Assembly: GCA_030704615.1 (NCBI GenBank) | Contig: CM060732.1 | Location: 80,600,001 to 80,664,000, forward strand | Source of the DNA: Takakia lepidozioides | Taxonomy: Eukaryota > Plantae > Bryophyta | Direction: 5' to 3' | Length of the DNA stretch: 64,000 nucleotides | In this document: piece after piece, positions 20,554-56,722 of the stretch | Layout of the letters: every line of letters begins with the position of its first letter | Numbering within the stretch: the first letter of the stretch is position 1 | Position numbers and translations under genes: made by a program | The notes under the pieces: generated by a model | Databases searched by the model: none | Told to the model about the DNA's origin: nothing | What the model saw: only the letters and a program-made list of their open reading frames with translations

Positions 20554-22256
20554 GATCTTTTACAGGTGTTGCACAAATATTTAAGCACATGTAGGAAAAA
20601 ATGAAGCTTGAGCCACATCCATTTGTTGGGTACAATGGCATGAGAAGATTTTCTTTCACATTAATAAACAAAAATTGGTTGATAGAGGTGAATGCGTCAT
20701 TGGGGGGGAAATGATTTTGTTTGGGTTTGAAACTTTGCATGCGTGTACGGTTGCGCACATACATGTAATTATTGAATGACATATTTGATGCACACACACA
20801 TTGAAGGTTGTTGTTTGCATTTCGCTTTATAATGAAGTGTATGATTGCAAGGACACATTATACATTATAATATATGTCCCTATGTTCATTTGTTCGTATC
20901 AGGACTTTGTCCATCCCTTCCCGGTCTTTTCTCTTGGCACCCCATCCGAAAACAACCCAAGTACATCAGGGCGGGAGCCGTGGGCGAGACGCCGCCCCAC
21001 GGTACCGGACGATGATGACGATGACAGTGATAGTGACAGTGACAACAACAATGAGCATGGAATTAACCAGGAGGATGTGCAAGCCATGGAGGATCTCTTA
21101 ATGCATCATGTGGGCACTGATGCATCCCATGAAGAGGGAACCCGGCCAATCGATGATCCTGAAATGGCCCCCTCAAATGACATGGAGAGGGAGGCGAGAA
21201 CTCCCTTGTACGAAGGGGCGAAAGTGAGTCGACTTTCAACAATCTTACTTTTGCTCAATCTTCAAATTCGATTTGGCATAAGTAATGTTGGGATGTCTGC
21301 CATAATGCGAACTATTGCAGACTATATCCTTGCTCCACACTTGAAACCCAAGATGCCACGGTCGCGGAAAGAGGCGCGCGAAGTCTTGGACTCTGTGGGG
21401 ATGGGCTATAAGATTTTTCATGCATGTCCATGTGATAAAACCCTATACTATGGAGAGGATGAGGATGAGAGACATCTTGCTTTGGACAATGCATGATTAT
21501 CCAGGTATATTTTGTTCCCCTATGAACAACCGCGTACATTCACTTGTCAATGCCGGATGAGGATGAGGATTGGGTTTGATTGAAGTAGCGGCGACAGTCT
21601 TGTGCACCGTAATGGGGTAGATGATATTATGGGCCATGCACATGACAACTTTTGTTTTTGCTAATGTGGCGGACTAACTATTTGCTCGGGGCTAAGCACC
21701 AAAGGGTACCATGCATGCTTGCATTGTTGCATGATCTGATGCACATAGCTCCCGCCATCTTCACAAGATGGTGTATCCCAACTACCGTAAATTTCTTCCT
21801 ATGAGCCATCGATGGAGAAGAAGAGAGAAACACTTGTTTGATGGCAAAGAGGAAGTACGTCCCCCCCTATGACATCGTCCGGGAAGTTTTGGGAGGACCG
21901 ATGGAAGGAGGCCCATGCGGGCACGGACGGTGAAGTGGACGTGCCCGGCATGAAACGACTTTCAATCTTCTACGAGTTGTCATATTGGGCGGTACATATT
22001 CCACAAAAACACCGTCAATATCCCTATACATGAATGTGATATTGTACATTTGGTATGCGTTGCATTGTCACTTTCACGTAAAAAAATTTGTGTAAGTCTT
22101 TGTGGGTGGGGATATATGTATGACCTGAAGATTCGCCATCTTCTAGATCCCATGCATATTGAGAACAATGTCTGCTCGTCTTTTTTTTTGGTTCTTCATG
22201 GCACGCCGGCAAAGAAGGGAGTGGCTGCAAAAGGAGATTATCTCGGTGTTAGAAAG

Positions 22257-22982
22257 TGTCGCGCACCTCACTTTCGTAAGCTCCCCTTCAAGTCATAGTT
22301 ACTCGCTTTGATGCGCGCGCCTAACTCCCAACCTGGCCGCCAGGCCAACTTGGAGCTTCGGCTGCTCACCGGGGCATAACGGTCCCCCTTTGATCTCCCA
22401 AAGAACCCTCCACCGATTTGGGCCCAACGGGAATTCCCTTTGGTAGTTGGCAGTCCGGAACAGCTCCCCACTCTTTGGTCGCTTTCCGGCTCGCTCGCTT
22501 ACTCACTAGTTTTTGTCACCAACGGGCTTGCACCGTTCTCGGGGTTACTACTCCCTATATATACTTCTGTAGCTGTCCGCGGGGGTTTCACAACCAGCCA
22601 TGCCATTTTTATGGCGAACCACCACAAAAACCTCGACTCCCGGTGATGAGTTGCGGTGAGTCTTGGCCCACTCACCACGGCCCCTATGGACCGTGATGAG
22701 TCCCAAGACTCCCCACGACTCCCACCACGAGGTCTCCGCCCCCATGGTGATCCTATGCCACCCCCACTAAGTCCCGCTAAGCTACCACCACCCCTTTGTG
22801 AAGCCACCCCCACCGCATCCCGGTGTGCGGGCTCCACCTAGTGAGCACCTCCGCCTCCTTGAGTGCTTTGGGCACTCAAGGGTGCTTCAGCCCCCCGTAC
22901 CTATCGCTGCCACTGCCCCCACCACAGGGGCAGCCCCTCATGTGTCCCGACCCCCCTGCCCTCAAGGCAAAGGGCAGCGACA
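22257..22982 (-). repeat. 3' LTR of the chromovirus (~726 bp)
   Basis: Near-identical direct repeat of 28204-28932. Confidence 0.95.
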
Positions 22983-23888
22983 CACACCCCTACCAACAGG
23001 GAGTCGATGTCCTCATCGACTTGTCCATTTTGTAGAAACGAACATCCAAGTTGTGGCGTCCCACATCAAGGAGTTTGTTTCCGTACCATGGCGTTCCATG
23101 GCGAAGAACCAAACCCCACACTTGACTCTACTCTCCACTAGCTAGTTCGGCCGACTTCCTCCAAGTCCTGGCCAGGGGTGGAGCCTCTCAAGCTCCTCCC
23201 AGTGCACTCTTCTTGGCCTACTTCAAGGCCAATGAACGATCCTCCCCGAGGATCGAATCGCCTTACTGCAACAACATTGCTTGCGATCACTCATGATGCC
23301 GCCTTTGGCATCACATTGCGCAAGGGTTCACCTCAAACCCCCTTTGACTAGGAAGATAACCTTGAACCAACCGTGCGCCCCAATCACTACAATTGGTTCC
23401 GTCTTGGAATGCTGGCCTGAGGTACGGGAACACGTCGAAGCCGCACTACGACTTCGTCCCGAGGCTACACGATTATAGTACGTGAACGGAAGCACGTAGC
23501 TTCCGCGTTAGCCCGCACTACAAGGCAACCACCTCGGTAGCGCAGTTATAGTACGCGCACGCGCCAGGTGCGCACTAGCACGTGAACTCCCAAAGAAGGC
23601 GCATGTTTCCTTGCCCCTTGGATGGGAGTCACCCGATTTCGGCATTGCGCAAACACACGATTAACCCAATTTACCTCTCCCACTTTTGTAAGCTAGCATG
23701 CATTCTACACACTAGCCAACCACACCATGCATCACCATTCCAAACAAAATAGGACGCACAACATTTCGAACCCATTTCCTTTATAACAAATTTTTGTACA
23801 ATACAAGTTTTTGCAATCGGATTCCTGAGCTAGCTAAGCCGGGCTAAGCATGCATTTCCTCCCCCACGCTCCAAGGTTGATGTCCCCA

Positions 23889-26456
23889 TCAACGCTTCTT
23901 CCGCTTTTGAGGTCGCCCTTCGAAAACTGCAACCGCCTCGGATGCGTTTCCCATTTCTGAGGCACGCACCCAAGATGCCTCCACATGATGATAGCCCTTC
24001 CATTTGACGAGATACTCCGTTTCTCGGTTCTTGAACCTCCTCAACTTAAGTACTGCCTCCACCTCGTACTCAGGTTCATTTTCATGATCCAACAGCACAG
24101 GTGGCGGACGCAACACTTGATGCCGATTCGGACGCGCTTCATCTTTGAAGTAAGGCTTCAAAAGGGAGACGTGGAATACTGGATGCACCTTGTTGTTTTC
24201 CGGCAGCTCCAATTCATACAGATCCTCATTCATAACCTTCCGGATGCGAAAGGGTCCCGCATACGGAGGTACGAACTTTGGACTCACTTCCGGAAGTAGT
24301 CGAAAATTCTTGATGTTAACCAGACCTCCGTGCTTGCCTCAAACTTCACTTCCCTCCACTTCCGATTTGCCTGCCTTTCATACCGTTTCCTAGCTTTGCC
24401 AATGTTGTACTTTGCGAGCTTCAACAAACGCTCGCGAAGTGCCCTCCAAAATTTACTCGTAAACTTTGGATCGCGGTCCGAGACAATATCCTTCGGGACT
24501 CCATGATGCTTTAAGACGTGGACGAAGTAAAGTCGCTCTGTTTCCTGCGCCGTTGTCGTGTCCTTGGTGGGGATGAAATGACCCATTTTACTGAACCTAT
24601 CCACCACCACCATGATTGCATCGAATCCTTTTGACAGCGGTATAGCAGTCATGAAATCCATCGAGAAGCTTTCCCAAGTCCCCTCTGGAATCGGCAAGGG
24701 TTGTAACAGCCCCGCTTGCTTTTTGTACTCGCTCCGATTTTGTTGGCATGTGGAGCATGTCTTGACATACTCCTCTGCCTCCTCCCTCAGTTTGGGCCAG
24801 AAATACTCTTTCTTCAAGAGTGCCGCAGTACGCTTGGCCCCGCCGTGGCCCGCAAGCGGGCTATCATGGCATTCTCTCAAGAGGCTATCTCTGATCCCTC
24901 CCTTCGGCACGTAGAGACGCTTTTGCTTATACCGGAGCAGTCCATTTTGCAAGTGGAACTGCGATTTAACCCCCATCCTCAAGTCCTGCATCACGGACTT
25001 CGCCAGCTCATCCTTCCGGCAAGCCTTCCGGATCTTCCTTTGGAGCGCCGTCTCGCCCTTGTACACCAACAAGAGCTGCTGCTTTCTACTTAAAGCATCG
25101 GCCACCACGTTGTCTCGTCCCGGTTTGTACTGGATATCCACGTCGAACACTGCCAAAGTATCTTGCCACCTAAGTTGTTTTGGGGACAACTTGGGCTGCG
25201 TGGCAAAATACTTCACCGTGACATTGTCCGTGAACACCTTCACTGGGTTGGCACCAACATAGTGGCGCCAAAGCTCAAGACAGTGCACCACCACCTTCAT
25301 CTCTTTCTCGTGCGTCGGCCACCGTCGTTCCACTTCATTTAGTTTCTTACTTTCGTAAGCCACTGGACGTCCATCTTGCATCAGTACACCCCCAATTGCG
25401 AAGTCCGACGCATCTGTATGTATCTCGAACAGACGATCGAACTCCGGGATTTTCAAGACTGGAGCTTCCGCCATCCGCTGCTTCAATTTAGCAAAAGCTT
25501 GGCCACAAAAGGTGTTCCATGCCCAGACTTTGGATTTACACAGAAGGTCTGACACCGGCCCCGCGATCTTGGCGAAATTTCTCACATACTTCCGGTAATA
25601 GGAGGCGAGTCCTAGGAAGGATCGCACTCCCGGGACCGAAGTCGGAGGCTCCCAGTCCAAGATTGCCCCCACCTTCCTGTCATCCATTCTGATCCCATCC
25701 TGTGTAATCACATGCCCCATGAACTCCACTTTTGTGACCCCGAATTCGCACTTTGAAGCTTTGGCATACAACTTCTCTTCTCGCAATTTTTGGAACACCC
25801 TTTTTCAGGTGTTCCAGGTGCTCCTCCTTTGTTTTCGAGTACACCAAGATGTCGTCGATGTACACGATCACAAAGTCATCCAACCACTCCTGAAAAATGT
25901 TGTTCATCAGCGTGCTAAATGTCGCTTGTGAGCCCAAAAGGCATCACCAAGAACTCATATGAACCATACCTTGTCCTACACGCGGTCTTCTCCTCATCTC
26001 CTTCCGCCACCCGAATTTGATGATAGCCGGAGCGCAAGTCGATCCGGCTGAAATATTTCTCTCCTGCCAACCGATCGAAGAGGTCGTCGATCCTTGGCAA
26101 ATGGTACCGGTTTTTTATAGTCACCTTATTCAGAGCCCTGTAATCGACACACATCCGCACCGTCCCATCCTTTTTATCTGCAAATAGCACCGGGGCTCCG
26201 TAAGGTGACTTACTCGGCCGGATGTACCCCTTTGACATTAGATCTTTGAGCTGAGTCTTCAGCTCGACCAACTCTCTGTGGCTCAACCGGTAGGGCGCCT
26301 TGGCAGGCGGTTCCGATCCCGGTATCACCTCAATCTTGTGGTCAACTCCTCTTCGCGGTGGCAAACCGCTTGGTAAATCCTCCGGCATCACATCCTGGTA
26401 TTTCTCCAAAATCCCCTTGATCCAATCTGAGCTCGGCTCCCCATCGCCTTCTCCCT
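23889..26456 (-). pseudogene. pol: Gypsy Pol (RT, RNase H, integrase, chromodomain), frameshifted, with an integrase deletion
   Basis: [59 protein letters not shown]...YLVKWKGY...SWV, spread over four ORFs. Confidence 0.9.
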
Positions 26457-28148
26457 TCACTTCTCTAATGAGAGCAAAAACTGGGGCTCGTGTGCCTCCT
26501 CCACGGCCCACTCCCTTGCTGACAGAAGGTTTATTCGCCCTCCCACGGGTTTGGGCATTTCCGACACTCGTAAGACCTCGCCACCATTCCCACATGGCAG
26601 CGTGACTACTCTCTTGCGGCCATCTATGACCGCTCCGGATTTGCTCAAAAATGTCATCCCCAAAATGAGATCCACTCCATCGATCTCGCAGATGGTGAAG
26701 TTCTCACGTCCCTCCCAACTCCCCAGTGGAAGAGGAACATCAAATGCCAACCTTGTCGCCAATTGCGGTTCTCCTTTGGCAGAACGCACCTCAATAGAGG
26801 CCCCCACGTCACTTGTCGGGAGTCCCAGCTTTTGTGCCGTTGCCGGTGTCATGAAGGAGTGCGACGCTCCTGTGTCCACCAATAACGACACGTTAGTTCC
26901 GGATATTATCCCATCCACGAACAATAACTGACTCCCTTTACGTAAGGCGCCAGTTTCCTGATACAACTCACAAGAAAATTTGCCTACCTTGCAAGTCCTG
27001 GCGACCACCGCTTCCACCAAGCGACTGATGGTATCTTCCGATAGCTCTGTGGTCGCCCGAGTCATGTTCAATTGCCGGGGCTTCGTGCACTTCTTGGCCA
27101 TGTGCCCGGGCTCCCCGCAATTGAAACACACTCCATCAAAGGTTGCCTTCTGTCCGCCATAGGCCGCTCCACCCACTTTTCCTTTCGAAGCACCGGGTGC
27201 CGCCTTGACTTGTGATGGCCCTCCCTTCGATTTCCACGTGCCATTGTCGCCGCGTGGCCTATCCCACTTCTTTTCCGGTCGGAAGGAGTCACCTTCCCGC
27301 CGGGTCTTCTTGTGGTTCAGCTCCGTACGACCTTGTCTTTCACCCCTAGGGACATCCGAGAAACATTCAGCCCTCTCAATTGCCTCGTTCAAAGTCTTAG
27401 GTGGCTTCTCCTCCAACTTCCGCCTGGCCCATGGGGCCAGTCCTGGCACAAAGTTGAAGACCATTTCCGGTTCTGCCATGTCCGCGACTTCGAGCAAAAG
27501 CACATTGAAAGCCTGGACATATCCCCGAGTGTCATCTGTTTGCTTCAAATTCCTCATCTTGTCCCGGGCAAGCCAGGACGCGTTGAGGGGCACAAACTGT
27601 CTCTTCATCAATTCCTTGACCCCACTCCAGTTCCAGGTTTCCGGGCTTGGACCTCGGTTGTGAAGGCGTTTCTGCCACCATTGTTGAGCATAGCCCCTCA
27701 AATAGGTGGGAGCCACTTCCACCCGATCCTCGTCACTCAACTTGGCCGCCCAGAAGTACTGCTTTAGCTCCAGGAGCCAGGTGTTGAGTGCCTTCCGATT
27801 TCGGACACCCTCGAAGGTGCCGGGTTCCTTAGGCTTCACCTTAAACTTTGCCTTAGTGGAAGTGGCATTAGCCGCCTTCAACACGTCTTTCAGCGTCCCG
27901 CCAAACTGCGCCAACAACCCTTCCCAAAAGGCTGCCAGCATGGGAGGCATCTGTTGGTCGGTCGGAGCTCTCAGGGATTCCTCGGGCTCTGACTCCTCGG
28001 ATTCCTCTCGCTCTTGAGCGGCCCCGTTTTCGGAAACCTGCATCGCTTCCTCAAACGGCCGCCTCGGTGACACGTCGCCCCTATCGGGCTCACCAGGATC
28101 ATCATTTTTTGGGCCGTTCCGCTGTCGCTTTGGCTTGCCCGACCCCAT
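26457..28148 (-). CDS. gag: Gypsy Gag (CCHC knuckle) plus aspartic protease
   Basis: ORF 26457..28202 with likely start MGSGKPKR; [14 protein letters not shown] and [10 protein letters not shown]. Confidence 0.9.
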
Positions 28149-28203
28149 GATGAGGCCAATCCCAAGGACGATCACGTACTGAACTCTAAGCTCTGATACC
28201 AAG

Positions 28204-28932
28204 TCTCGCGCACCTCACTTCGGTAAGCTCCCCTTCAAGTCATAGTTACTCGCTTTGATGCGCGCGCCTAACTCCCAACCTGGCCGCCGGGCCAACTTGG
28301 AGCTTCGGCTGCTCACCGGGGCATAACGGTCCCCCTTTGATCTCCCAAAGAACCCTCCACCGATTTGGGCCCAGCGGGAATTCCCTTTGGTAGTTGGCAG
28401 TCCGGAACAGCTCCCCACTCTTTGGTCGCTTTCCGGCTCGCTCGCTTACTCACTAGTTTTTGGTCACCAACGGGCTTGCACCGTTCTCGGGGTTACTACT
28501 CCCTATATATACTTCTGTAGCTGTCCGCGGGGGTTTCACAACCAGCCATGCCATTTTATGGCGAACCACCACAAAAACCCTCGACTCCCGGTGATGAGTT
28601 GCGGTGAGTCTTGGCCCACTCACCACGGCCCCTATGGACCGTGATGAGTCCCAAGACTCCCCACGACTCCCACCACGAGGTCTCCGCCCCCATGGTGAGT
28701 CCTATGCCACCCCCACTAAGTCCCGCTAAGCTACCACCACCCCTTTGTGAAGCCACCCCCACCGCATCCCGGTGTGCGGGGCTCCACCTAGTGAGCACCT
28801 CCGCCTCCTTGAGTGCTTTGGGCACTCAAGGGTGCTTCAGCCCCCCGTACCTATTGCTGCCACTGCCCCCACCACAGGGGCAGCCCCTCATGTGTCCCGA
28901 CCCCCCTGCCCTCAAGGCAAAGGGCCGCGACA
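28204..28932 (-). repeat. 5' LTR of the chromovirus (~729 bp)
   Basis: Direct repeat of 22257-22982. The inner terminal CA has become GA; the PBS follows after 2 nt. Confidence 0.95.
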
Positions 28933-31944: not shown

Positions 31945-32654
31945 TTGAGAGGGATCCCTCGGATTGAACTCCCAAGTTTTAGACCAACAGTCTGTGTATC
32001 TTTCCACATCCGTTGGATTACCCCCTTTCTTCGGTCTCCACTAATCTACAAAAACTTTTTTGTAATTGGGATCCCCACTATCTCGTACAACATCCGATAT
32101 TGTCATTCCCATCCAAACAGGAAATTTTTTCGTATTATTTGGGCGAACAAGGACAAAGAAACAATTTTCAATATCCTTGAATGGATTCAATGGTACCTTT
32201 GGTCGGCCACACCTCGGACCACAGTAGGGGTTCGACATTTTTCCTCATCAGGCAACACGTCACGAGATTGCATATAAATGCCGTATCTCCTATGGTACTC
32301 TGCCAATTTTGTTGCTGGCCAAACTCCCTCGAGAAGTTTGTCATTTGATTCTTCCAAATGAAGATTGAGTTCTTCAAGAATATTTGTCCAATATTGATCG
32401 TATTGTTTCATGACATTTCCATAGTGATCATCCATAACCATCCCTTTTATCCAAAAATCCATGTATTTTTTAATACCAGACTTGATGCAAGATTGCTTCC
32501 CTGAGGAATCCTCATCATCTCCCCAAATAGGCTTCTTAGATACTGCTTTTGGCTCTCCAACTGGGAGCATCGAAGAACCATCATCTTTTGCTTTCCATAT
32601 CTTAACATTGTCATTTTTTGGAAGCCAATGTGAATCTGTCGTTGAAGATGTGTA
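31945..32654 (-). mobile_element. C-terminal part of DUF7869-like transposase copy 2
   Basis: TDSHWLPK...LPVGEPK...PIWGD...QYDQYWTNILEEL and PFKDIE..FVLVRP...PVWMGM align with copy 1 (~10610-11300). Truncated by the CACTA right end. Confidence 0.85.
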
Positions 32655-32910
32655 GAACTCTTTGTTGAACTGGGCACCTGATCTTTTTGGATTGGAAGTC
32701 GCAGCCGAGCGACTCCTGTGGCAGTAGCTGCTCATTGTCCACTAACACTTTAATCGATATAGCTTTAACGTGTCCTGAGCCTGATGACAACATCCCATTG
32801 TCCACAACGGTGTGGAGACGATTTGACACATCTTTATTGTCTCCCAGGTGAGCTAGGTGATCCTGATCATGACAAAATCACATTTTCCAGTTCGGTGTGG
32901 AGGCGATTCA

Positions 32911-34202
32911 TTAGCGATTCATCCGACCCATTTTAAATTGTGTCCCAGCCCCCGACAACCTCGAAAATGTCGATGTCTCTTGTGACCAAATTTCATTGTC
33001 AACAAACAATTTCTCTTCCGACAATTTGAGTGATGCAGTGGGGGTTACATTGTTGCCGGATGGACTGGGACCAGAAGGTGAAACCCCTGCTGTTGTCACT
33101 GCCAAGTTCTCCGTTGCTACTACATTTTTCAAAGATGCACTGGAGGTTACACTGCTGCCGGATGGACTGAGCCCAGAAGGTGAAACCCCTGCTATTGTCA
33201 CAGTTGTCGATTTCCCCGTTGCTATTACACTTTTGTATGATGCACTGGGGGTTAACTGTTGCCGGATGGACTGGGCCCAGAAGGTGAAACTCCTGCTGTT
33301 GTCACTGCCAATTTCTCCGTCACTACATTTTTCAAAGATGCACTGGACGTTACACTGTTGCCTGATGGACTGGGCCCAGAAGGTGAAACCCCTGCTATTG
33401 TCACTGCCAATTTCTCCGTTACTAGTACACTTTTGAATGATGCACTGGGGGTTAAACTGTTGCCGGATGGACTGGGCCCAGAAGGTGCTGTTGTCACTGC
33501 CAATTTCTCCATTGCTACTACATTTTTCAATGATGCGCTGGGGGCTACACTGTTGCCGGATGGACTGGGCCCAGAAGGTGTAACCCCTGCTGTTGTCACT
33601 GCCAAGTTCTCCGTTGCTACTACACTGTTCCCAGATGGACTTGGCCCTGAAGACGGCACAGATGTCTTTCGATCCGACGATGAATTGGTAGACTGACTGC
33701 TCTGGGCCAAATGTTTTGAGAATGCAGTGGAGGTAAGATTGTTGCCTGATGAGCTGGGTCCAGAAGATGGCACTCCGGCTCCCTTCAGTGCCAAATTCTC
33801 CACCGGTGTTACCTTGCTCCCAGGTATTTTTGGTCCTTCAGACGGGACCTCCGTTGTCCTTACTGACTCCTTAAGTCTCAAGGATGAAGCTTCTCCATCT
33901 GACGATGACTGCATAGACTCCACATCTTCCCTTAGCTTTTGAGAAATAACATTGCTGACTGGGCTTCTTGGGGGATTGAAATTTCTGCTGAGCTGATTCA
34001 TCGCCACACCAAAGCTAAAGCTACCACCGCTGAAATCTGTCCTCTCATTGCAAAGAGTCTCGCTAGGTAGCCGAAGATCTCTGGCACATAGTGTGGTGGG
34101 AGCTTGGAAAAGAATCAGAGCCAGGACACTCAGGAGGTGAAATATGGTGAGGCCAAAGGGCGTCCTTTTGCAGGTACTGATATGGGTGGATATAACGTCC
34201 AT
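32911..34202 (-). CDS. Secreted multi-repeat peptide precursor (~430 aa if a 1-nt deletion is repaired) with ~8 xPSGPSPSGN-type motifs
   Basis: ATG at 34202 (MDVIS...), hydrophobic segment TIFHLLSVLALILFQAPTTLCA|RDLR, then ~35-aa repeats. The stop at 33252 comes from GTTAACTGTT, whereas the sister repeat at ~33451 reads GTTAAACTGTT; reading continues into ORF 32911..33201. Confidence 0.7.
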
Positions 34203-34917
34203 GTGAACTCGAACCTGTGACAGGTTTGGCGGGGCGTTGAACCGTTCATCTCGGTTCAACAACTGTCTGGCGAGAAGAATGGGGCTGTCATGTGATGAAG
34301 CAGGAGGTGGCAGGCTCTATGTGATCATGGCTACATGTGAATAGGATGTGATATAGAAAAGATTAGGGATTCTCTCTCTCTCTCTCTCCCTGGCGTGAAA
34401 AGTCGTAGATATGAGCTGTGAACAGGGATAGAGAAACAGGGATAGAGAAACAAGGATAGAGAAAAAGGCATCGAGAAAGTGCCGTGAGATTGAAGAACAG
34501 AGCTGGAATGGGGGAGAATCGTGCATGGTGTGGAGGCTAGGAGGACTAGATATGTTCTAGTACCATGTGCCATCGTTGTGAATTCATACTGTACCTGTCC
34601 AGTGAGTTTTAGATTGCTGGGACTCGAGCGGATGTTTGGCGTGAGTTACTATCGTGTAATTGTACATGACTGGAATGAAGAAAGGTATTGTGAGCACTAA
34701 GCGTGTGACAGGAATGTGGCAAGAGCCACTGTAGGCTCTACTTGGCACTGTGTGATAATCTCCCTAAAGTAGAGGAGCTTTTGCATTGTTGATTGGGCCA
34801 AGAATTAGTTGGATACAGACGGTGTGCAAAGAAGAAGAAAAGAAAAATCAAATAGACCTGAACTACGAAGGGCTATTTGAGCCTGTAGGAATTGAAAGAC
34901 TGAGGAATGTGAGATCT

Positions 34918-36820
34918 TGGTATCAGAGCAGATTTCGACCTTTTGGGATTTGTGGTTTATGAGCCAATTGACATTCGGCTTTGGAAGCTCGTTGCTTCAG
35001 TGGAATATAATCTCTAAAGGTAGGTGTAGCATATCTCCAGAGTCGATGGAAGGAGAGACAAGCCATACTCAGGCTGCAGTTGAGAAAACACAAGAAATTG
35101 TTGTACCAGAAGAATTTATCACTATGAAAGCGGGAGATCTAGCTCAGGTCATTCGCGAGGCGGTGGCTAGTGGAGTGAAGGAGGGCATAGCCGCTGTTGG
35201 CAAGAGACCTAAAGCAAATCCAACTACACTGGCGGTGCCACCCAACCAGCAAGCAGTAGACCAACCAGTAAGTGCTCCCCATAATGATCTGCATGCAAGA
35301 ACTAGGACAAAAAGGCTAGAGGTGGTTCTGCATCTGGTGCATCCTCAGTTGACAAGGAAATTAGGAAGATGACGCATCTTCCTGAATTCCATGGTCGCCC
35401 AAATGTGTCTTGCACTGAGGTGCTGTTTTTTCTGGAGACTCTGGAAGAGTTCTTCAGTGAGGACTATACGGATGCAGATAAGATCCGCACAGCCTCATTG
35501 CAAATGAGAGGCAAATCTAAAGAATGGTGGATTAGAATGAAAGAGAAGCCGGGTCTGGAAGGGAGAGTGGACCCGATCACCACATAGGCTAAGTTCAAAC
35601 GGGTCTTCAAAGAACAGTACCTGCCAGAGGACTATGCGCACATGATGAAAATGGGTTTGATGGAACTTAGCCAGGGAAGAATGAGTGTGGCAGACTACAA
35701 GGTGAAGTTTGACGAACACGCTTCATACTTCTATTCCTTGAAGGAGTCTGACAGGGTGGATTTCTTCCTGACTGGGCTAGACAAAGCAATCAGATTTTTG
35801 GTTCAGGCATATGAGCCGAAGACAGAGGCTGATGCATATAGACTAGCTATCAATTTTGAGAGCTAGCACAGAGCACATCTGGGCGCAAGTGCACCTACTG
35901 ATAGGGATTTCAAGCCGAAGTCATTCCCTTTTGGTGAAGGTCAGAAAAGAAAGAACTGGAAAAGGTTCAATAAGAAGACAACAAGGACTGAGCCTCGGGG
36001 TAATCAGAAGTTTGGAGCCTCAGCGACCAAACGCCTATCAGAGAAGGAATAGGAAGAACACCGACGGTTGGGTCATCAATCTCTTGGGGATCGAAAATGT
36101 CAACTTCTTCTATGCACAAACTTCTAGCCCCAGTAAATGGGGATTTTCTGCCATCGGGCGTTCGAGTGTCCCAAACGCGTACAACGCGGAGCTGCAGCTG
36201 TGATTGTGCAAGAGATTGAGGATAAGATAGATGTGGATGCACTTGGGACAAGCAAAGGTAAACAGCTGAGGATCTCAGCGGCTGTGATGGGTGAAGAGAT
36301 AGACCATAATCCCACAGTCATACGATTAAATGGTCAAGTGGGAAGAGAAACCACGACTGTTTTGATTGACCCAGGAAGCAACCATAACTTCTTGTTTCAA
36401 AATTTTGCAAACAAGTGCAAGCTGCAGTTGAAGGAGGTTGGCACCAGTACCATTTTTTTTCCCAATGGAGATGCAGGATCTACCAACAACAGAAGCTTGG
36501 AGATCCCTGTCACAATGCAAGGGATCACCACTGAGGTAGATTTTGAGGTCTGGGATGGCGCAAGGTACGACATCATCTTGGGAATGCAGTGGCTGGCAGC
36601 TGTGGACACTCAAGTGGCATGCCAAAATTGCTTAGTGGAGGGGGTATTGCCTGGTGGTAAGCGATTCAAGCTTACAGGTACGAGAGCCCTACCCAATGTT
36701 CCTTTGTTGTCAGCCCTTCAAATGAAACGATACATACGGAAGACAGCTGATCAGCTGTTCTTCGTAAGCATTCATGATAATGATGACGAAGGCATTGAAG
36801 TGGAGTTGAACAATCTCAAC
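34918..36820 (+). mobile_element. Truncated Ty3/gypsy (PBS, gag, protease); LTR limits not defined
   Basis: TGGTATCAGAGC at 34918; gag-like ASLQMRGKSKEWW and LSQGRMSVADY; GHRAFECP-like knuckle end; protease VLIDPGSNHNF...YDIILGMQWL. Ends abruptly at ~36820. Confidence 0.8.
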
Positions 36821-36823
36821 AGA

Positions 36824-38284
36824 GCAGAAGGCGTGGTGAACAATTCATGGAATTGGAAGGTCAACTTACATGACATACAAGAGGTTGAGCAAAGAAGGAG
36901 TTGGAAACAGTGATTCATGCCACATAAAACGAGATGTATTGGTGAAGGGCGTCGGGATACATTACGTGTGTTACCTCCTGAGATAAATTGGAAAAGAGTT
37001 CGAGAGAAGTCAAACGAGGTGAACATTCTCTCATCTCTTCTATTAATTTTAAAATTATTTTATAATGAAGATCACAATGCGAATTACATTATCTGATATG
37101 ACATAGTGAACTTGTTAAAACTAAACATTTGTCAGATGTATTTACAAAGTAATTCCACGTTAGTTTTAGGCGGAGAGCCATTTTATACAACGTCGGATTG
37201 CATGTCCATGATCTGACAGCTATGCATATGGCAGGCTAATCAGGTTCTGGGCTTAGGGCCTATTTCAATCTCAGCTGTGAGTCGCATTCGTGAAATTTTT
37301 TTTTTTGAACATCGAGGTTAGAAAAAATAGAGGGACTTTCGCAAAGTGCACAGAATGTGAGATGCTAAAGGATCTCATCAAGAAGTCAGTAAAGAGAAGT
37401 GCAGAGCAGATGTGTCATAAAAAAACTCTTGACAAGCATCTGAAGCATCAGGAGTCCTGCCGAAGACTCTATCATAGCTGGAGGAACGAGTCCGTGATGA
37501 TGCCAATAGAATTCTTGTGCATCATTCACGATAAAATTGATCACCGAAAAACCGTTATACCAAGTTTGCAGACAACGAACAAAATGATATCTGGATTGGG
37601 GCAGCTTCTAGTGTTCTTAACGGGTATGGTTACCCACGGTCATGGAGATGACGTATATGCCCAATACTCAATTGATTTTTGGCCAGGAGATCCGAATTTC
37701 ACTATTGGATCTTTGGCAAGATGTTTGAGATCACAATTGGAGAAACCAACGTGTCGAGAATCAATGAATATTTTTTATTATCCTATGCAAACGATTTCTT
37801 TGAAGTTCTCGTGAGAGGGAAGTCTAGGTGCTTGGATGTTTTGAAGTCTTATTCCGAAGATGATAAAAGAGGACCGGTTCCATTGCTTAGAAGATTGTAT
37901 CTACAAATGGACAATTGTGTTAAAGACAACAAGAACAGGTGGATGTTGACATTCCTGTCATTGCTCACTTCGAGAGGGGTGTTTGAAGAAATTCAACTTG
38001 GTTTTCTCATGGTTGGTTATACGCATGAGGACATTGATGCTTACTTCAGTTATCTTTCCAAGAAATTGAAGGAGAACAGTACCTATGTCTTATCTGATCT
38101 CATGAAAAATTTCATGGTATCTCAGGAGCTCCAGTTCATTCCATAGATCATTCAAGAAGTTCAAGACTTCAAGGATTTTATTGATGGTTTTATTTTGGAT
38201 GGGGATGAGGCATTGGTTGGAACGACAGAAATGCATGTATTCCGTTTTGTTGTCGATTCAAATGGATGGCCCGTAATGCAATAC
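36824..38284 (+). mobile_element. N-terminal/central part of DUF7869-like transposase copy 2, intron ~37019-37234
   Basis: GRSTYMTYKRLSKEGV, FAKCTECEMLKDLIKKS, IIHDKID, YLQMDNCVKDNKNRW, GYTHEDID; ends at GWPVMQY (38284). Confidence 0.85.
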
Positions 38285-40026: not shown

Positions 40027-41323
40027 TCAAAGTGGCATCACTACGAGGCCATCTGCGGAATGGTACGGATTCTCCCTCCATGTGTTTTGCAAAATCTTCA
40101 GGAGATCAGAAGCCTTTCCCTTAGAGCGAGGGCTGTAGTCACTCTGGATCAATACAAGAAGTTTAGTGTACATCCCTGCCTGGACAGCTCTGAGATGGAT
40201 CTCGACATCCGGGGCAGATCGACAAATTGCCCACAAAGCTGCAAGTGCATGCTCTGTGGCGAGATCTGACTTCCTCAACATGATTTTCACAAGGGCGGGA
40301 ATCGCCAGAGCGTGATCGCACACTGCAGCCCGCGCTTCAGCACATGTACAGAGAAGGTCAATGACTGAAACTGCTAGCTCAAGGATCTGTCGATCGGCAT
40401 CCTCGACTAGAAGGTCCACGATTAGTGCGACCATTCCAGCTTCCACTGCCTTCACTCTCGTTCTTCTCAATGAGAAAATGGCTTCAAAACATTTCAGGCT
40501 AGCTAGAACACCTCTTGGATTAAACTTCCCTTGTTTGAGGAGATCGATCAGTCCGTCCATGGCTCCATCAAGGGATGCTATGTTTGACTTCAATTCATCA
40601 TGTTCTACTGCCATACTTCCCAGAAGAATGGCTGCGTTGATTCTCGCATCAGGCGTTCCGCCGGAGAGAAACCAGCATATAGCCGCCAGCTGTTTAGGAC
40701 CCGCCAGCATTTTCGCTGTTTTCTCATTCAGCGAGACCAGAGCTAGTGTACCAAGGGCTTCTTCACATGCACCGGCACTTTCACGCGCATTCTCAACCTC
40801 TCGGACTTCTATTTCTAAGCAATTATGGGAGCCAAGCACCGCGGCTAGAACAGGAACTGCTCCGGCCATTGACACACACAGCCGGTTTTTCTCGCTTTCC
40901 ATTGTCAAGCAACGGAGCCTCTGCAACGTGTCCTCTCGCATAACCCCGTTGGTGATGTCTCCTAGCATATGTTGCACTTGCACAGGCTCTGCCGGTTGCT
41001 TTGGTGTGGGAATCCGCTCAACCCCCCGGGAGCGATTCCTCACGCACCATTCCTGTATGAGACGCCGGAGGGTGTGGTTCGGTGTAAGGTCATGTCTCTT
41101 GAGGACCTGCATTGTGGCAGGGCATGTATTGTTTCCTGCTTCCAGCCATCTTTCTATGCTGGCCCGGTCGTAGGTCACGCCTGTGCTTAGACTGACGGGT
41201 CGGCATCATCAGATTGAGCGAAATAGGACATCTGAAATACGGTGGTATAGTAGTAATCTCAAGTCTCTCCGGAGACAGTCGGTCGTCTGGGCCGGCTATG
41301 GATGTCTCCGTGTTGCCGGTCAA
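40027..41323 (-). CDS. U-box/ARM E3 ubiquitin ligase, PUB25/PUB26-like; frameshift at ~41200 (pseudogene or sequence error)
   Basis: IPPYFRCPISLNLM / SLSTGVTYDRASIERW...TCPAT...TPNHTLRRLIQEWCVRNRSRGVERIPTPKQPAEP, then ARM repeats ending KASDLLKIL. No in-frame ATG in this exon; AG acceptor-like site at ~41348. Confidence 0.85.
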
Positions 41324-50246: not shown

Positions 50247-50612
50247 ATGGCGTACATTCTGTCACTGACGGGAATGCTCCTGCTAGCCCTTCTGATAGCA
50301 GTGCAACACGTTGATGGAGTTAGAGACTTGCGATGTACTGGAAGAACGGGCTGCCGCACTCAACTTTCTGAGACTCCACGCGACCTCCCTGCAGACGTGA
50401 ACACCAAGCTCATTGCAATGGAGACGGACCTCCCACACGCATACAGTACCGATCAATCTATTCAGAGTAGTGCTGTGCCGGCCACCACGATCAACGCAAC
50501 AAAAGTGAGTGCCGGCTCCAAGAGGAATGCAAAGCGCAAGTTCCGCGCCCAGCGCGCTTCTAAGAGCCCCAGTGGTTGTATTTCAGGCTGTAACAGTCAA
50601 AATGGAAACTAG
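50247..50612 (+). CDS. Small secreted peptide precursor (121 aa) with C-terminal SPSGCISGCNSQNGN
   Basis: Intronless ORF; signal-peptide-like MAYILSLTGMLLLALLIAVQHVDG|VRDLR; basic stretch KRNAKRKFRAQR before the C-terminal motif; TATA-like CTATAATA at ~50046. Confidence 0.7.
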   Translation: MAYILSLTGMLLLALLIAVQHVDGVRDLRCTGRTGCRTQLSETPRDLPADVNTKLIAMETDLPHAYSTDQSIQSSAVPATTINATKVSAGSKRNAKRKFRAQRASKSPSGCISGCNSQNGN

Positions 50613-51786: not shown

Positions 51787-54700
51787 TGTTGGAGATGGAG
51801 ATCCACAACATGGTCATGTAGGATTAACTCTTAGATGCTACTCTTAGATGCTACTACTAGGTTTAATATTTAGCACGTAAGTTAGCAGTTACATAGAGAA
51901 GCCACCCTGCGTAGTGGTGAGCCCAGTTAAGCTTAGCGATCTATGATGACCACCACACTTAGTTGCTGCCCCACTCTCCGAAGGCTTGACCATCCAAGGG
52001 AGAACTTGGACTTCCCTGCAGAGCTGTTTAGAGCTTCAGTATGTAGTGGGCTCTTAGAAAGTTGGAAGTTAGACCTTTTTGCAGTAAGCTTTCCTTACCT
52101 GATCCACTTTATGGTATCAGAGCAGGTTAGTAGTGGGACCCTTTGCTGAACATTAGGACTTCGGATAGCACTTTTGCTAGGTGACAGTAACAACAGCGTG
52201 TATCAGAGGTCTCAAAGCTAGGTGGACTTTCCAACTACAATACTTGGAAGTTCCGTGTTTCCAGCTTGTTACAAAGGGGGGAAGGAGAGTCTGCCGCTGA
52301 CTACGAACGTAGGCGGAAGAAAGCATTGGCGATAATCAGTCTCTCTGTGCGAACGTAGGCGGAAGAAAGCATTGGCGATAATCAGTCTCTCTGTGCGAGA
52401 TGAAATTATTCCACACATCGCAAGGATCACAGATCCAGCGCTCATGTGGCAGACTTTGAAGGACCTGTATGAGCAGAAAAGCGGAGCACGTCGTCTATTG
52501 CTCAAGAGCCGCCTCACCAACATTCGATTGGAGAATGGCGGATCGGTGATAGAGTTCATCAAGCAGCTCAAAGAGATTATCAACCAGCTAGCCAACATCG
52601 GAGAACCTGTCCGTGAAGAGGACCTGGTGGAGCAGATTCTGAATTCTCTACCTGAGAGCTTGGAATCACTGGCATGCACCTTGACCTACCGACCTGAACT
52701 TCCAACGCTCAATGAATTGATTGGTATTCTTCTATTGGACGAAGCCAAGCGAGAAATTCGGGAGGCTCGTGGAAAAAAAACTGACCCTGAGGCTTTGCTG
52801 ATCAAGTCTAAATATAAAAGCCAGCCCACCGACAATAAATATCGGAAGGGGGCCACTGTCAAGCGTGAGGGGAGCTGTAACTTTTGCGGTAAACCTGATC
52901 ATTGGATGCGCAATTGCACTGAATTGTCAAATGAGATCAAGCGTCGTGCTGCAGAACGTCTCAAAAATTCTGTCAACATCATTGAAGACAGTAGCGATGA
53001 GGAGATCGATAATTTTCAGGAGTGCAATGATACTCCCACTAACAATCTAGCTGCAGATATCCTCGAGCTCAACGTAGCTCAGTACCGCGATGCATCTGAT
53101 TGATATGTGGATAGCGGGGCCACTAAGCATGTCTCGGGCAATGACAGTCTTCTATCCAATATCAAAAAGGGAGAAGAAAAATCCAAGGTCAAAACCGCCG
53201 GAGACCTGTACCACCAAGTAGCCGGGAAAGGCAATATTGTGATTCCTGTCAATAATGATGCAATAAAGGAAGAAGTTTTGTATGTCCAGGGTGTATGCAA
53301 GAATTTGCTATTTGTTGGTACCTTGACTGACAAAGGATTTAGACTTCTCTTTGACGACAAGAATGTTTTCTTGCTGAATGCTGGCCTTGAGGTACTCGGT
53401 AAAGGAATTCGTGATCTATCGAATGGCCTTTACAAACTATCAGTGTTGAATGAATCATTCGCAGGCACAGTGGAAAGTAGCACGGACCTCACACGGATCT
53501 GGCATCACCGGTTGGGCCACTTGAATTACAGGAGTTTGAATTTCTTATCACAGAAAGGTCTTGCCGTCAATCTTCCTCAAAATCTATCCATGAGCCATGA
53601 TGTCTGTCATGCATGTGCGCTTGGAAAGCAAAGTCGGGAGAAAGCTCCAAAGAAGATTCTTCACAGAAGTTCATCGCCTCTTGATATGATCCACACTGAT
53701 CTCTGTGGACCATTGTCCACACCCTCTCTCTTTGGAGCTTTGTATGTTCTTACATTTACAGACGTCTATAGTCGGTACTGTTGGGTTTTCTTCCTTCGGA
53801 AGAAAAGTGACACCTTCATCTTGTTCAAGCAATTTAAGTCCAGAGTTGAGAAATAGTTTGGACGTACTATCAAAGTGTTGCGATCAGACAAAGGTGGGGA
53901 GTACTGCTCGACTGCATTCTCAAATTTTTGTGCAGATCATGGCATAACACGACAGTTCACCCAATCTTACAACCCGCATCAAAATGGGATCGCAGAGAGG
54001 AAGAACCGAACTCTGATAGAGCGAGCCAGGAGCTTGGCCTTCGGGGCCCATCTTCCAGCACGTCTTTGGGCAGAGACTGTCAGCACGCCAAATTACCTTG
54101 TCAATATGTCTCCTACCAGGGCGAACAATGGCATCACACCACACCAAAAATTGTTTGGAGCCCCGCCTGATGTCAAACATTTGCGAGTGTTCGGCTGTGT
54201 ATGCTTTGTCCACATCAACTCTCACCGGACCAAATGGTCACCAAAATCCATGAGGTGTGTACTTTTGGCTTATGACACTAGCACCAAGGGCTATAGATGC
54301 TTTTGTCCAGGGATGAGCAAGATAATCATCTCTAAGGATGTTGTTTTTGATGAGGATCACATGCACTATGTCCTAGCTGCTGCTGATAGACAACCACTTG
54401 AAGATCGCAGCATTCATTTCTCATGCCCAACCGATAGCCAACCGGACGGACCACGGCGGGAGCTCCCACAACAAGAGTCTCTTGATTTTTTGGAGCCTTC
54501 TCCAGTCCAAGAACCACCTGAAGGTACTGATGACAACTTGTTCAAAGGATTGCATGACCCAAACTCAGATACTCTTCATGAATCCTTGCCTTCTATGTCA
54601 TCATCTACAGGTCAATCAAGTGCAGACTTAGAGGGTAGTTCTGCTTCGACCTCCAGTATGCACGGGCAACTAGAGGCAGTTCCACCAATACAGGGAGGTG

Positions 54701-56722
54701 TATATACGCGCACTGGCCGAGCCATTCACCCTCCAAGACGATTCCATGATTTCGTGGTGGGTTTGTCTGAAGCTGTCCTAGAACCCACCACTTATGCCGA
54801 AGCATCTCGACACCCAGGATGGGTCGACGCCATGGAAGAGGAAATGGCCTCAATTCACAAGAACAAGCATGGACTCTTGAAGATCTGCCCCCAAGTAGAC
54901 AACCCATTACCACCAAATGGATCTATAAAGTCAAAACACACGCTGATGGAACCACTGCCAAATTGAAGGCGCGTTTGGTGGCTCGTGGTTTCCAACAACG
55001 AGCAAGGGAGGATTTTGATGAGACCTACGCGCCGGTGGCCAAATACAACACCTTGCGAGTTGTTACAGCACTATCAGGTCAGAATGGTTGGCCTATATTT
55101 CACTTAGATGACAAAACTGCCTTCTTAAACGGTGAATTGACAGAGGAAGTGTTTATCCAGCAACATGAAGGCTTCGAGGCTAAGGGGAAAGAGAGCAAGG
55201 TTTGCAAGTTACGTAAGGCCTTGTATGGTCTTCGTCAGGCACCGCGTGCCTAGTACACCAAAATAGACAATTACCTTCAAGAACAAGGATTGAAGCGCAC
55301 GAACTCGGATGGAAACTTATATTACTTCAGAGAAGGAGACAAAATTGTCCTACTCATGCTGTATGTAGATGATGTTTATCTTACTGGTAACCATGACAAC
55401 AAGCTACAATGGATACGATCAGAGATCAAGAAACGTTTTGAGATGACAGACATGGGTCTAATCAAGCACTCTCTTGGGCTTGAGTATTTCTTTCAACTTG
55501 AAGGGATCATTGTGACTGAAAGGGGCTACGCGGCCCAAATGCTGGAAGAATTTGGATATGGGCAATGCAACGCAGCAGTCACGCCCATGCTCCCCGGGCT
55601 CAAACTCAAGATCGACATGGGAGCACCAGCGGTGGACACCCAACTCTATCAACGAATGGTTGGGAAGTTAAACTTTCTTACTCAAACACGGCCGGACGTC
55701 TCTTTCGCCGTGAACATGGTGAGCAGATTCTCCAACCAGCCTCAAACCCCACACATGGACGTCATCGAACATCTATTTAGATATATCAAAGGTATTGTGG
55801 ATTTGGGGATTTGTTACCAGCGAGGGGAGGCAAGCATCCTCACTGGATACTCAGATGCAGACTGGGCCGACGACCTCAACGATCGGAAGTCCACCACAGG
55901 ATATCTGCTCAGACTAGGTTCAAGTCCCATCTCTTGGGGAAGCAGGAAACAGCCATGCACGGCTCTGTCTTCGACAGAAGCTGAGTACATGGCTATGACT
56001 AGTGGTGCTAAGGAGGCGGTGTGGTTAAGGAAGGCTTCTTTCACAACTATAATTCCTTGATGAGAAAGAACCCACGCAAATGATATGTGACAATCAAAGT
56101 GCAATCAAGCTGTCAGAAAATCTAGTTTTTCACGACAGAACGAAGCACATAGAAACATTGACCGCGTCATCGACGTTGTTGACTCAATCAAGCATGGGAA
56201 TGAAGTGCAAACGTCTAAACTAGACCCGGCGAGGGTGAAGGAAGAAAAACTTGCGGCGGAGAGGGCAAGAAAAGGGAAGGACCCCATAGTGAAAACTGGG
56301 GAATGTTCAGTCGTACAAATTATATCGGCCCAGGAACAGGAATTAGAGCAGCTTGTGGGGGAACACGAGCAAGCTAGGGCTGTTGCATATCGGTACTCAA
56401 ATGCCATGCAAATCCGATCGTGACCATGGTTGAAGGGGAATTGGGTGACATGGGCGGGCCATCTAACATCGCGGGAAACACAGATAAAAGAAGCGTTGTC
56501 ATCTTTCCAACGTGCAACACGTTTGTCGAATCGAACCATTTTATTAGGGAAAAAATCACAAGATGAGAGTTGAAAATCAATCACATTCCATCCAGAGATC
56601 AACGGGCAAACATGCTTACTAAGCCATCGGGTCGGACCCTCTTCAACGAGCTTCGAGATGAACTTAGCTTGGTGCGAACAATTGATTTCTGAGAGTAAGC
56701 TTTCCGTACCTGATCCACTTTA
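51787..56722 (+). mobile_element. Ty1/copia LTR retrotransposon, decayed; 3' LTR mostly deleted
   Basis: 5' LTR 51787-52111 (TGTTGG...CCACTTTA); PBS TGGTATCAGAGC at 52112; CNFCGKPDHWMRNC, DSGATKH, WHHRLGH, RSDKGGEY, QNGIAERKNRT, YVDD, YSDADWA; TSD TGGTG at 51782-51786 and 56723-56727. Confidence 0.92.

Follow-up and report, generated by a model that had tools for sequence, protein, structure and literature searches.

Does the Takakia lepidozioides locus at 32911–34202 (minus strand) of the 64-kb window, the whole stretch of DNA analysed here, encode a secreted precursor that would release several copies of a peptide ligand, or a repeat protein of another kind? A sequence-only reading of this locus had described a signal-peptide-like start, a variable region, and about eight tandem (V)SPSGPSPSGN motifs, and had interpreted them as a possible distinct ligand family related to the CLE, IDA, and PIP peptides. 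Here we evaluated the gene structure, the constraint on the repeats, their resemblance to known ligands, and the alternative explanations.

As assembled, the repeat gene is an intron-free ORF on the minus strand (33252–34202) of 316 codons, closed by a TAA stop at 33252–33254. Its start codon is the ATG at 34202, the first in frame, with no in-frame ATG further 5′. The first 141 codons, which form the unique part of the gene, contained no stop in this frame, compared with eight and six stops in the other two. In the Kyte-Doolittle profile, residues 1–40 (34083–34202, minus strand) formed a signal-peptide-like segment consisting of an n-region with K12-R13, an h-region at residues 18–32, and a c-region ending in TTLCA before RDL. 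The h-region was the sole strong hydrophobic peak of the protein, the top windows starting at residues 20–24, and at approximately 15 residues it is too short to span a membrane. This is the signal-peptide-like segment ending at CA-RDL that had been described earlier. The segment is followed by a unique pro-region of approximately 80 amino acids (residues 41–118; 33849–34082, minus strand) with no repeats, no family match, and an AlphaFold pLDDT below 50.

Putative promoter elements, read from the sequence, were located upstream of the gene at 34348–34388 (minus strand), namely a TATA-like CTATAT at approximately 34351–34356 and (GA)9 at 34371–34388. Between the TATA-like box and the start codon there were four upstream ATGs (34336, 34328, 34291, and 34249), which count against reading the gene as a ligand precursor. 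Still further upstream on the same strand, three tandem copies of an 11–14-nt unit (TTTCTCTATCCCTG-like) occupy 34420–34465, ahead of the (GA)9 run and the TATA-like box. A CT-rich run was also found approximately 60 nt upstream of the ATG of an ORF at 50247.

Behind the signal-like segment and the unique region, TRF and a second repeat search both detected a minus-strand array consisting of a degenerate copy of (V)SPSGPSPSGN and eight good ones. Nowhere else in the six-frame translation of the 64-kb window did the pattern GP[SN]P..[NH] occur. The degenerate core VPSEGPKIPGS starts at 33848, and the first codons of the good copies (units 1–8) lie at 33773, 33659, 33584, 33491, 33389, 33290, 33186, and 33084, the first good core being at residue 144. 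The good units are 114, 75, 93, 102, 99, 104, 102, and 99 nt long, and the degenerate unit is 75 nt long. Units of 75–114 nt (25–38 amino acids) leave spacers of 14–27 amino acids, so the uniform spacers of approximately 22 amino acids claimed earlier were not found. On the other hand, every motif on the earlier list was present on the minus strand in the listed order.

The units differ in age and preservation. Unit 0 (33774–33848, minus strand) combines the degenerate core with a spacer akin to the later spacers. The old units 1 and 2 (33585–33773, minus strand) carry several synonymous changes and have retained their cores (SSGPSSSGN in unit 1, SSGPSPSGN in unit 2); unit 1 has a spacer unrelated to any other. 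In the young units 3–6 (33255–33584, minus strand), all four cores are PSGPSPSGN, and unit 6 closes the ORF with SGNS and then the stop. The array continues in the next frame (32911–33251, minus strand) with the remainder of unit 6, units 7 and 8, a non-hydrophobic tail of 35 amino acids, and a stop at 32911–32913. The core of unit 7, PSGLSPSGS, is the only young core with amino acid changes (P to L and N to S), while that of unit 8 is intact; the terminal Asn is invariant in the seven good units other than unit 7. The spacers of units 2 and 7 were identical at 39/39 nt, indicating that the amplified block was spacer-core-spacer.

DNA alignment of the units placed a frame break at 33254–33255 (minus strand), where 1 nt is missing after AGT, giving AGT-TAA. 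Unit 6 is 104 nt long, compared with 99 and 102 nt for its neighbours, the base is missing directly after the SGNS codons, and a T3 run in unit 4, the most similar unit, corresponds to T2 in unit 6. The assembled ORF consequently holds six good cores and the degenerate one, and units 7 and 8 are readable only in the next frame. Eight good motifs do exist, as proposed, but the assembled ORF stops after the sixth owing to a 1-nt deletion that had been missed; the earlier observation was thus correct in its motifs and its signal-like start, but not in presenting the array as one ORF. Splicing around the stop is unlikely, since the sole GT...AG spanning it is 12 nt long. The deletion reflects either a real truncation after core 6 or an assembly error hiding an eight-core protein.

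Other 1-nt indels in the same window, in a neighbouring U-box/ARM (PUB) gene and in an LTR pair, point to a possible assembly error behind the frame break. Alignment of the PUB gene (40030–41278, minus strand) with its homologue in Sphagnum requires two frames, the frame being broken at 41200–41206 within the U-box, and the aligned N-terminus lacks an ATG; the gene either is a pseudogene or carries an assembly indel. A young Ty3-type LTR retrotransposon (22247–28932, minus strand) has LTRs of approximately 730 nt at approximately 22.2 and 28.2 kb. The two LTRs differ by five 1-nt indels, most of them at short single-base runs, and approximately six substitutions, and the gag-pol of the element is split into at least three ORFs. 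The LTR indels and the split gag-pol hint at homopolymer indel errors in the assembly.

The repeat gene is set in a transposon-rich stretch, and lies outside the neighbouring LTR retrotransposon. Capture by a transposon was rejected, as the gene falls outside the LTR pair at 22.2 and 28.2 kb and is not flanked by inverted repeats. A lone Ty3 protease fragment (36137–36913, plus strand) and a series of copia-type gag/integrase ORFs (52372–54966, plus strand) are also present in the window. A 182-amino acid ORF (32187–32735, minus strand) lies immediately 3′ of the repeat gene in the same orientation; it gave no Pfam match, is not in the protein collection, and may be a transposon fragment.

We then compared nucleotide changes in the core with those in the spacers. 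Among the translated units 1–6, pairwise pN/pS was 0.14 in the core and approximately 1.0 in the spacers. The ratio of synonymous to non-synonymous distinct variants in these units was 7:2 in the core and 6:19 in the spacers (Fisher p = 0.013). In the young units 3–6 alone, it was 1:0 in the nine codons of the core and 5:15 in the 25 codons of the spacers; 5.4 non-synonymous changes were expected in the core and none was observed (Poisson P = 0.0045). Third codon positions accounted for 8/10 of the core changes (binomial p = 0.003), whereas the spacer changes were distributed 10:9:11 across the three positions. The core of unit 2 differs from the young cores by four synonymous differences, and both of the older units 1 and 2 retain S-G-P-S...S-G-N. 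These results indicate that purifying selection is limited to the nine-residue core, while the spacers drift. The changes in unit 7, past the stop, are compatible with relaxed constraint, in numbers too small to weigh. Since a glycosylation module would be conserved as well, this constraint does not separate a ligand from a wall protein.

To place the core among known ligands, the 12-mer GVSPSGPSPSGN, with its final Asn as position 12, was compared by hand count with the mature peptides in Table 1 of PMC8462819. It was identical to MpIDA1 (EVPPQGPSPIHN) at 7/12 positions in an ungapped alignment, among them those of the central GPSP and the terminal Asn, to TDIF/CLE41 (HEVPSGPNPISN) and MpCLE1 (HKNPAGPNPIGN) at 6/12 each, and to MpCLE2, CLV3, and IDA at 5/12 each. 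P4, G6, P7, P9, and N12 of the 12-mer were all common to MpIDA1, MpCLE1, TDIF, and MpCLE2. CLV3 has P4, G6, P7, and P9 but His at position 12, and Arabidopsis IDA shares only P4, P7, and N12. A random order of the same 12 residues gives P4-G6-P7-P9-N12 with an arithmetical probability of approximately 1/5300. Judged by these alignments, the 12-mer fits the CLE/IDA skeleton gap-free and in register. The SGN ending had been regarded as the feature setting the motif apart; it is less new than claimed, as MpCLE1 ends in ...IGN and TDIF in ...ISN (PMC8462819). The G-N ending is thus common to MpCLE1, and TDIF likewise lacks the penultimate His. However, the 12-mer lacks two features typical of TDIF, an N-terminal His and a central Asn (GPNP), and the precursors of H-type CLE/TDIF peptides carry a single motif.

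Membership of the CLE family was assessed by the motif R/H-x-V-P-S-G-P-N/D-P-x-H-N over 12–13 residues or by a match to a curated CLE profile. By eye, P4, S5, G6, P7, P9, and N12 of the motif were present, and R/H1, N/D8, and H11 were absent. Even at E ≤ 10, the Pfam CLE profile matched neither the whole ORF nor the repeat region nor any single unit, so that both the full motif and a profile match were lacking. Across Pfam, the ORF, the post-frameshift piece, the repeat region, and the single units gave only a sub-threshold match to Lsm_C, which we took as chance. SGPS is the defining core of IDA/IDL and PIP/PIPL (PMC4526919), and the IDA/IDL core S(G/A/V)PS occurs as SGPS in all good units except unit 7 (SGLS). 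The order of signal peptide, variable region, and motif also resembles that of IDA/IDL precursors. IDA/IDL peptides, in contrast, continue with (R/K)(R/K)HN and occur as one motif per precursor, whereas the repeat gene has P-S-G-N at this place, with no basic residue and no His, in many copies. The start of the core resembles the SGPSP of PIP/PIPL (SGPSPxGxGH), but despite the SGPS core the GxGH ending, which is shared by PIP and CEP, was found in no unit, the ending being SGN instead. PIP and CEP have been reported only from seed plants or angiosperms (PMC8462819, PMC13091385), while the host of the repeat gene is a bryophyte. Additionally, no basic or otherwise recognisable cleavage site was found beside the cores. 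The missing penultimate His and basic residues, which help define IDA and most CLE peptides, count against reading the gene as a ligand precursor.

The layout of the gene was closer to known systems. With near-identical cores and less constrained linkers, it has the architecture of a multi-copy precursor, a class that is not a homology family. Multi-domain CLE and CEP precursors had been cited as precedents, and the literature agrees: multi-domain CLE precursors carry 2–6 motifs approximately 30 amino acids apart with spacers that are alike, and a single exon has been shown for two rice genes (PMC2254619); the motif count is five in CEP9 and two in each of PIP2, PIP3, and PIPL1 (PMC4526919), so that multiple motifs are a likeness to these precursors too. 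The closest parallels were rice CLE75 and CLE76, Medicago CLE68, and wheat CLE30 and CLE31, in which near-identical motifs of 12–13 residues with a (P/S)-(S/T)-G-P-x-P core are repeated approximately 29–37 amino acids apart (PMC2254619). In multi-domain CLEs, however, the first motif lies 50–75 amino acids into the protein, whereas the first good core of the repeat gene comes later and the protein is longer. The CLE motifs also have a basic residue in first place and mostly an HN or HH ending (PITS in rice CLE76), in contrast to the repeat gene, which has no basic residue and ends in SGN. Among the best matches of an Atlas feature search were a multi-CLE cluster and 'Precursor of CEP9', with scores of only 0.78–0.80, which we treat as a lead and not as evidence. 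Hydroxyproline-rich systemin precursors of Solanaceae and Convolvulaceae are single secreted proteins that yield several Hyp-glycopeptides of 15–20 amino acids; their sequences are unrelated to the repeat gene, and the systemin peptides are longer. On paper, the gene resembles multi-copy ligand precursors and is a demonstrable member of none of CLE, IDA, and PIP. The proposed fit to this superfamily accordingly held for the skeleton in register, the layout, and the core-limited constraint, but not for a Pfam CLE match, a homologue, or an unbroken frame.

Searches for relatives of the repeat gene were negative. A word-indexed search of 5.8 billion proteins returned nothing for the full ORF at E ≤ 1e-3 and nothing for the 140-amino acid repeat region at E ≤ 10; an exhaustive HMMER search of 1.84 billion representatives gave 0 matches; none of five ORFs of the window was present in the protein collection by exact look-up; and a protein-based scan of metagenome contigs revealed no relative. 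A degenerate DNA pattern encoding PSGPSPSGN matched at 120 metagenome loci, which we attribute to chance because each had one match only and most of the matches lay in GC-rich contigs, in frames that do not code. A literature search for the motif returned only a scorpion-toxin linker. The neighbouring PUB gene had its best match in Sphagnum fallax at 60% identity, followed by liverworts at approximately 50%. As the nearest sampled relative of even this gene is only 60% identical, the absence of a homologue is weak evidence, and with no close relative of this bryophyte in the databases, a fast-evolving precursor would escape detection. Elsewhere in the window, a 121-amino acid ORF (50247–50612, plus strand) has the layout of a small secreted peptide precursor, with a clearly hydrophobic N-terminus, a stretch of basic residues, and SPSGCISGC...NGN at the C-terminus, immediately ahead of the stop. 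Paralogy between this ORF and the repeat gene was rejected (BLASTP E = 13).

The product may instead be a secreted structural repeat protein that stays intact, such as a Hyp-/Ser-O-glycosylated wall or mucilage protein of AGP/HRGP-like and possibly beta-rich character, in which SPSGPSPSG would serve as glycosylation modules or exposed loops and the V/T-rich spacers as scaffold. Ser/Pro-rich tandem secreted proteins are common in plants, and the composition of the mature part is suggestive, with 22.5% Ser, 47% P+A+S+T, and 8 SP, 7 GP, 3 TP, and 2 AP dipeptides; the 47% is close to the range used for flagging arabinogalactan proteins. Pro, however, makes up only 9.8%, well under classical AGPs or extensins, the 13 A/S/T-P dipeptides in 276 residues are confined to the cores, SPPP and long (SP)n runs are absent, and neither reading frame ends in a hydrophobic C-terminal GPI signal. 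AlphaFold, run on the single sequence, predicted the spacers as strands (pLDDT 55–86) with the cores in loops, and such strands, which would not be required of a mere linker, count against the ligand reading as far as the model goes; the model as a whole was of low confidence (mean pLDDT 52.8, pTM 0.41). Replacements in the spacers mostly exchange V, I, L, A, T, and M for one another, thereby keeping beta propensity, and unit 0 has kept its spacer and lost its core. Against a folded repeat, the spacers show no coding constraint, with pN/pS near 1 and changes spread evenly over codon positions, and the spacer of unit 1 is unrelated to the rest. A glycomodule also does not explain why the Gly and the terminal Asn are invariant in the exact CLE/IDA register. 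We consider an intact wall protein unlikely, though a real contender.

A non-functional locus, either a one-time precursor gene now decaying as a pseudogene or a never-expressed ORF in this transposon-rich stretch, would account for the premature stop, the position of the sole amino acid changes in young cores past that stop, the neutral-looking spacers, the upstream ATGs, and the absence of homologues in protein and metagenome searches; the neighbouring PUB gene is likewise frame-broken and without a start codon at its aligned N-terminus, and LTR-retrotransposon sequence lies on the flanks. Yet 316 codons are open, including the 141 unique ones without a stop where the other frames have 6–8, the cores before the stop show almost only synonymous changes, and the shortened product keeps the signal segment and six cores. 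The break itself may be an error of the assembly, as the LTR indels and the similarly broken conserved PUB gene suggest. Taken together, we regard a dead locus as quite improbable. We also considered the plus strand as the true coding strand, with ORFs at 32996–33436, 33259–33696, and 33727–33942 that encode ...LLPDGLGPEGETPAVV... repeats and are open across the array over 71–146 amino acids. These ORFs are fragments in different frames without the signal segment or the unique N-terminal part. Read on the plus strand, most of the changes that leave the minus-strand protein untouched would alter codons, and the constraint accordingly favours the minus frame. Plus-strand coding was therefore rejected as highly improbable.

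Among these explanations we favour, tentatively and at slightly less than even chances, a multi-copy precursor of CLE/IDA-like ligands. The intron-free bryophyte gene would then encode a secreted pre-pro-protein containing 12-residue peptides of the form (G)V-S-P-S-G-P-S-P-S-G-N. The signal peptide would carry the protein into the ER, and the prolines of the SGP/SP sites would be hydroxylated and perhaps arabinosylated. Subtilase-type endoproteases and carboxypeptidase trimming could free several identical peptides, each with a free C-terminal Asn, and the peptides may be ligands of an HSL/TDR-type LRR receptor kinase of subfamily XI, in which paired arginines would hold the C-terminal Asn. 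The earlier interpretation as a multi-copy ligand precursor is supported in part, by the architecture, the single exon, the match in register, and the constraint on the core; the lack of a homologue, of a Pfam CLE match, and of processing sites, together with the broken frame, speaks against it.

In Physcomitrium patens, HSL-clade receptors are present and IDA was not found (Furumizu et al., PMC8462819). The core of the repeat gene stands between IDA (GPSP) and TDIF/MpCLE1 (...GN), which makes the gene a candidate source of ligand for such orphan receptors. In its most specific form, which we hold to be doubtful, the proposal is that the gene belongs to a putative local cluster of polyprotein genes encoding a bryophyte-lineage CLE/IDA branch with a GN terminus, its peptides being released in many copies and acting on moss HSL/TDR-type receptors that lack a known IDA ligand. 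The peptide is short enough for direct synthesis and testing. If the product is a wall glycoprotein, the finding is an ordinary one. If the ligand reading is true, the gene would provide a concrete candidate ligand for these orphan HSL-clade receptors and would bear on the divergence of CLE and IDA. Signal amplification has been proposed for multi-domain CLE precursors (Oelkers et al. 2008, PMC2254619), and if an early land-plant lineage had a precursor with six to eight copies, amplification through polyproteins would be shown to be old.
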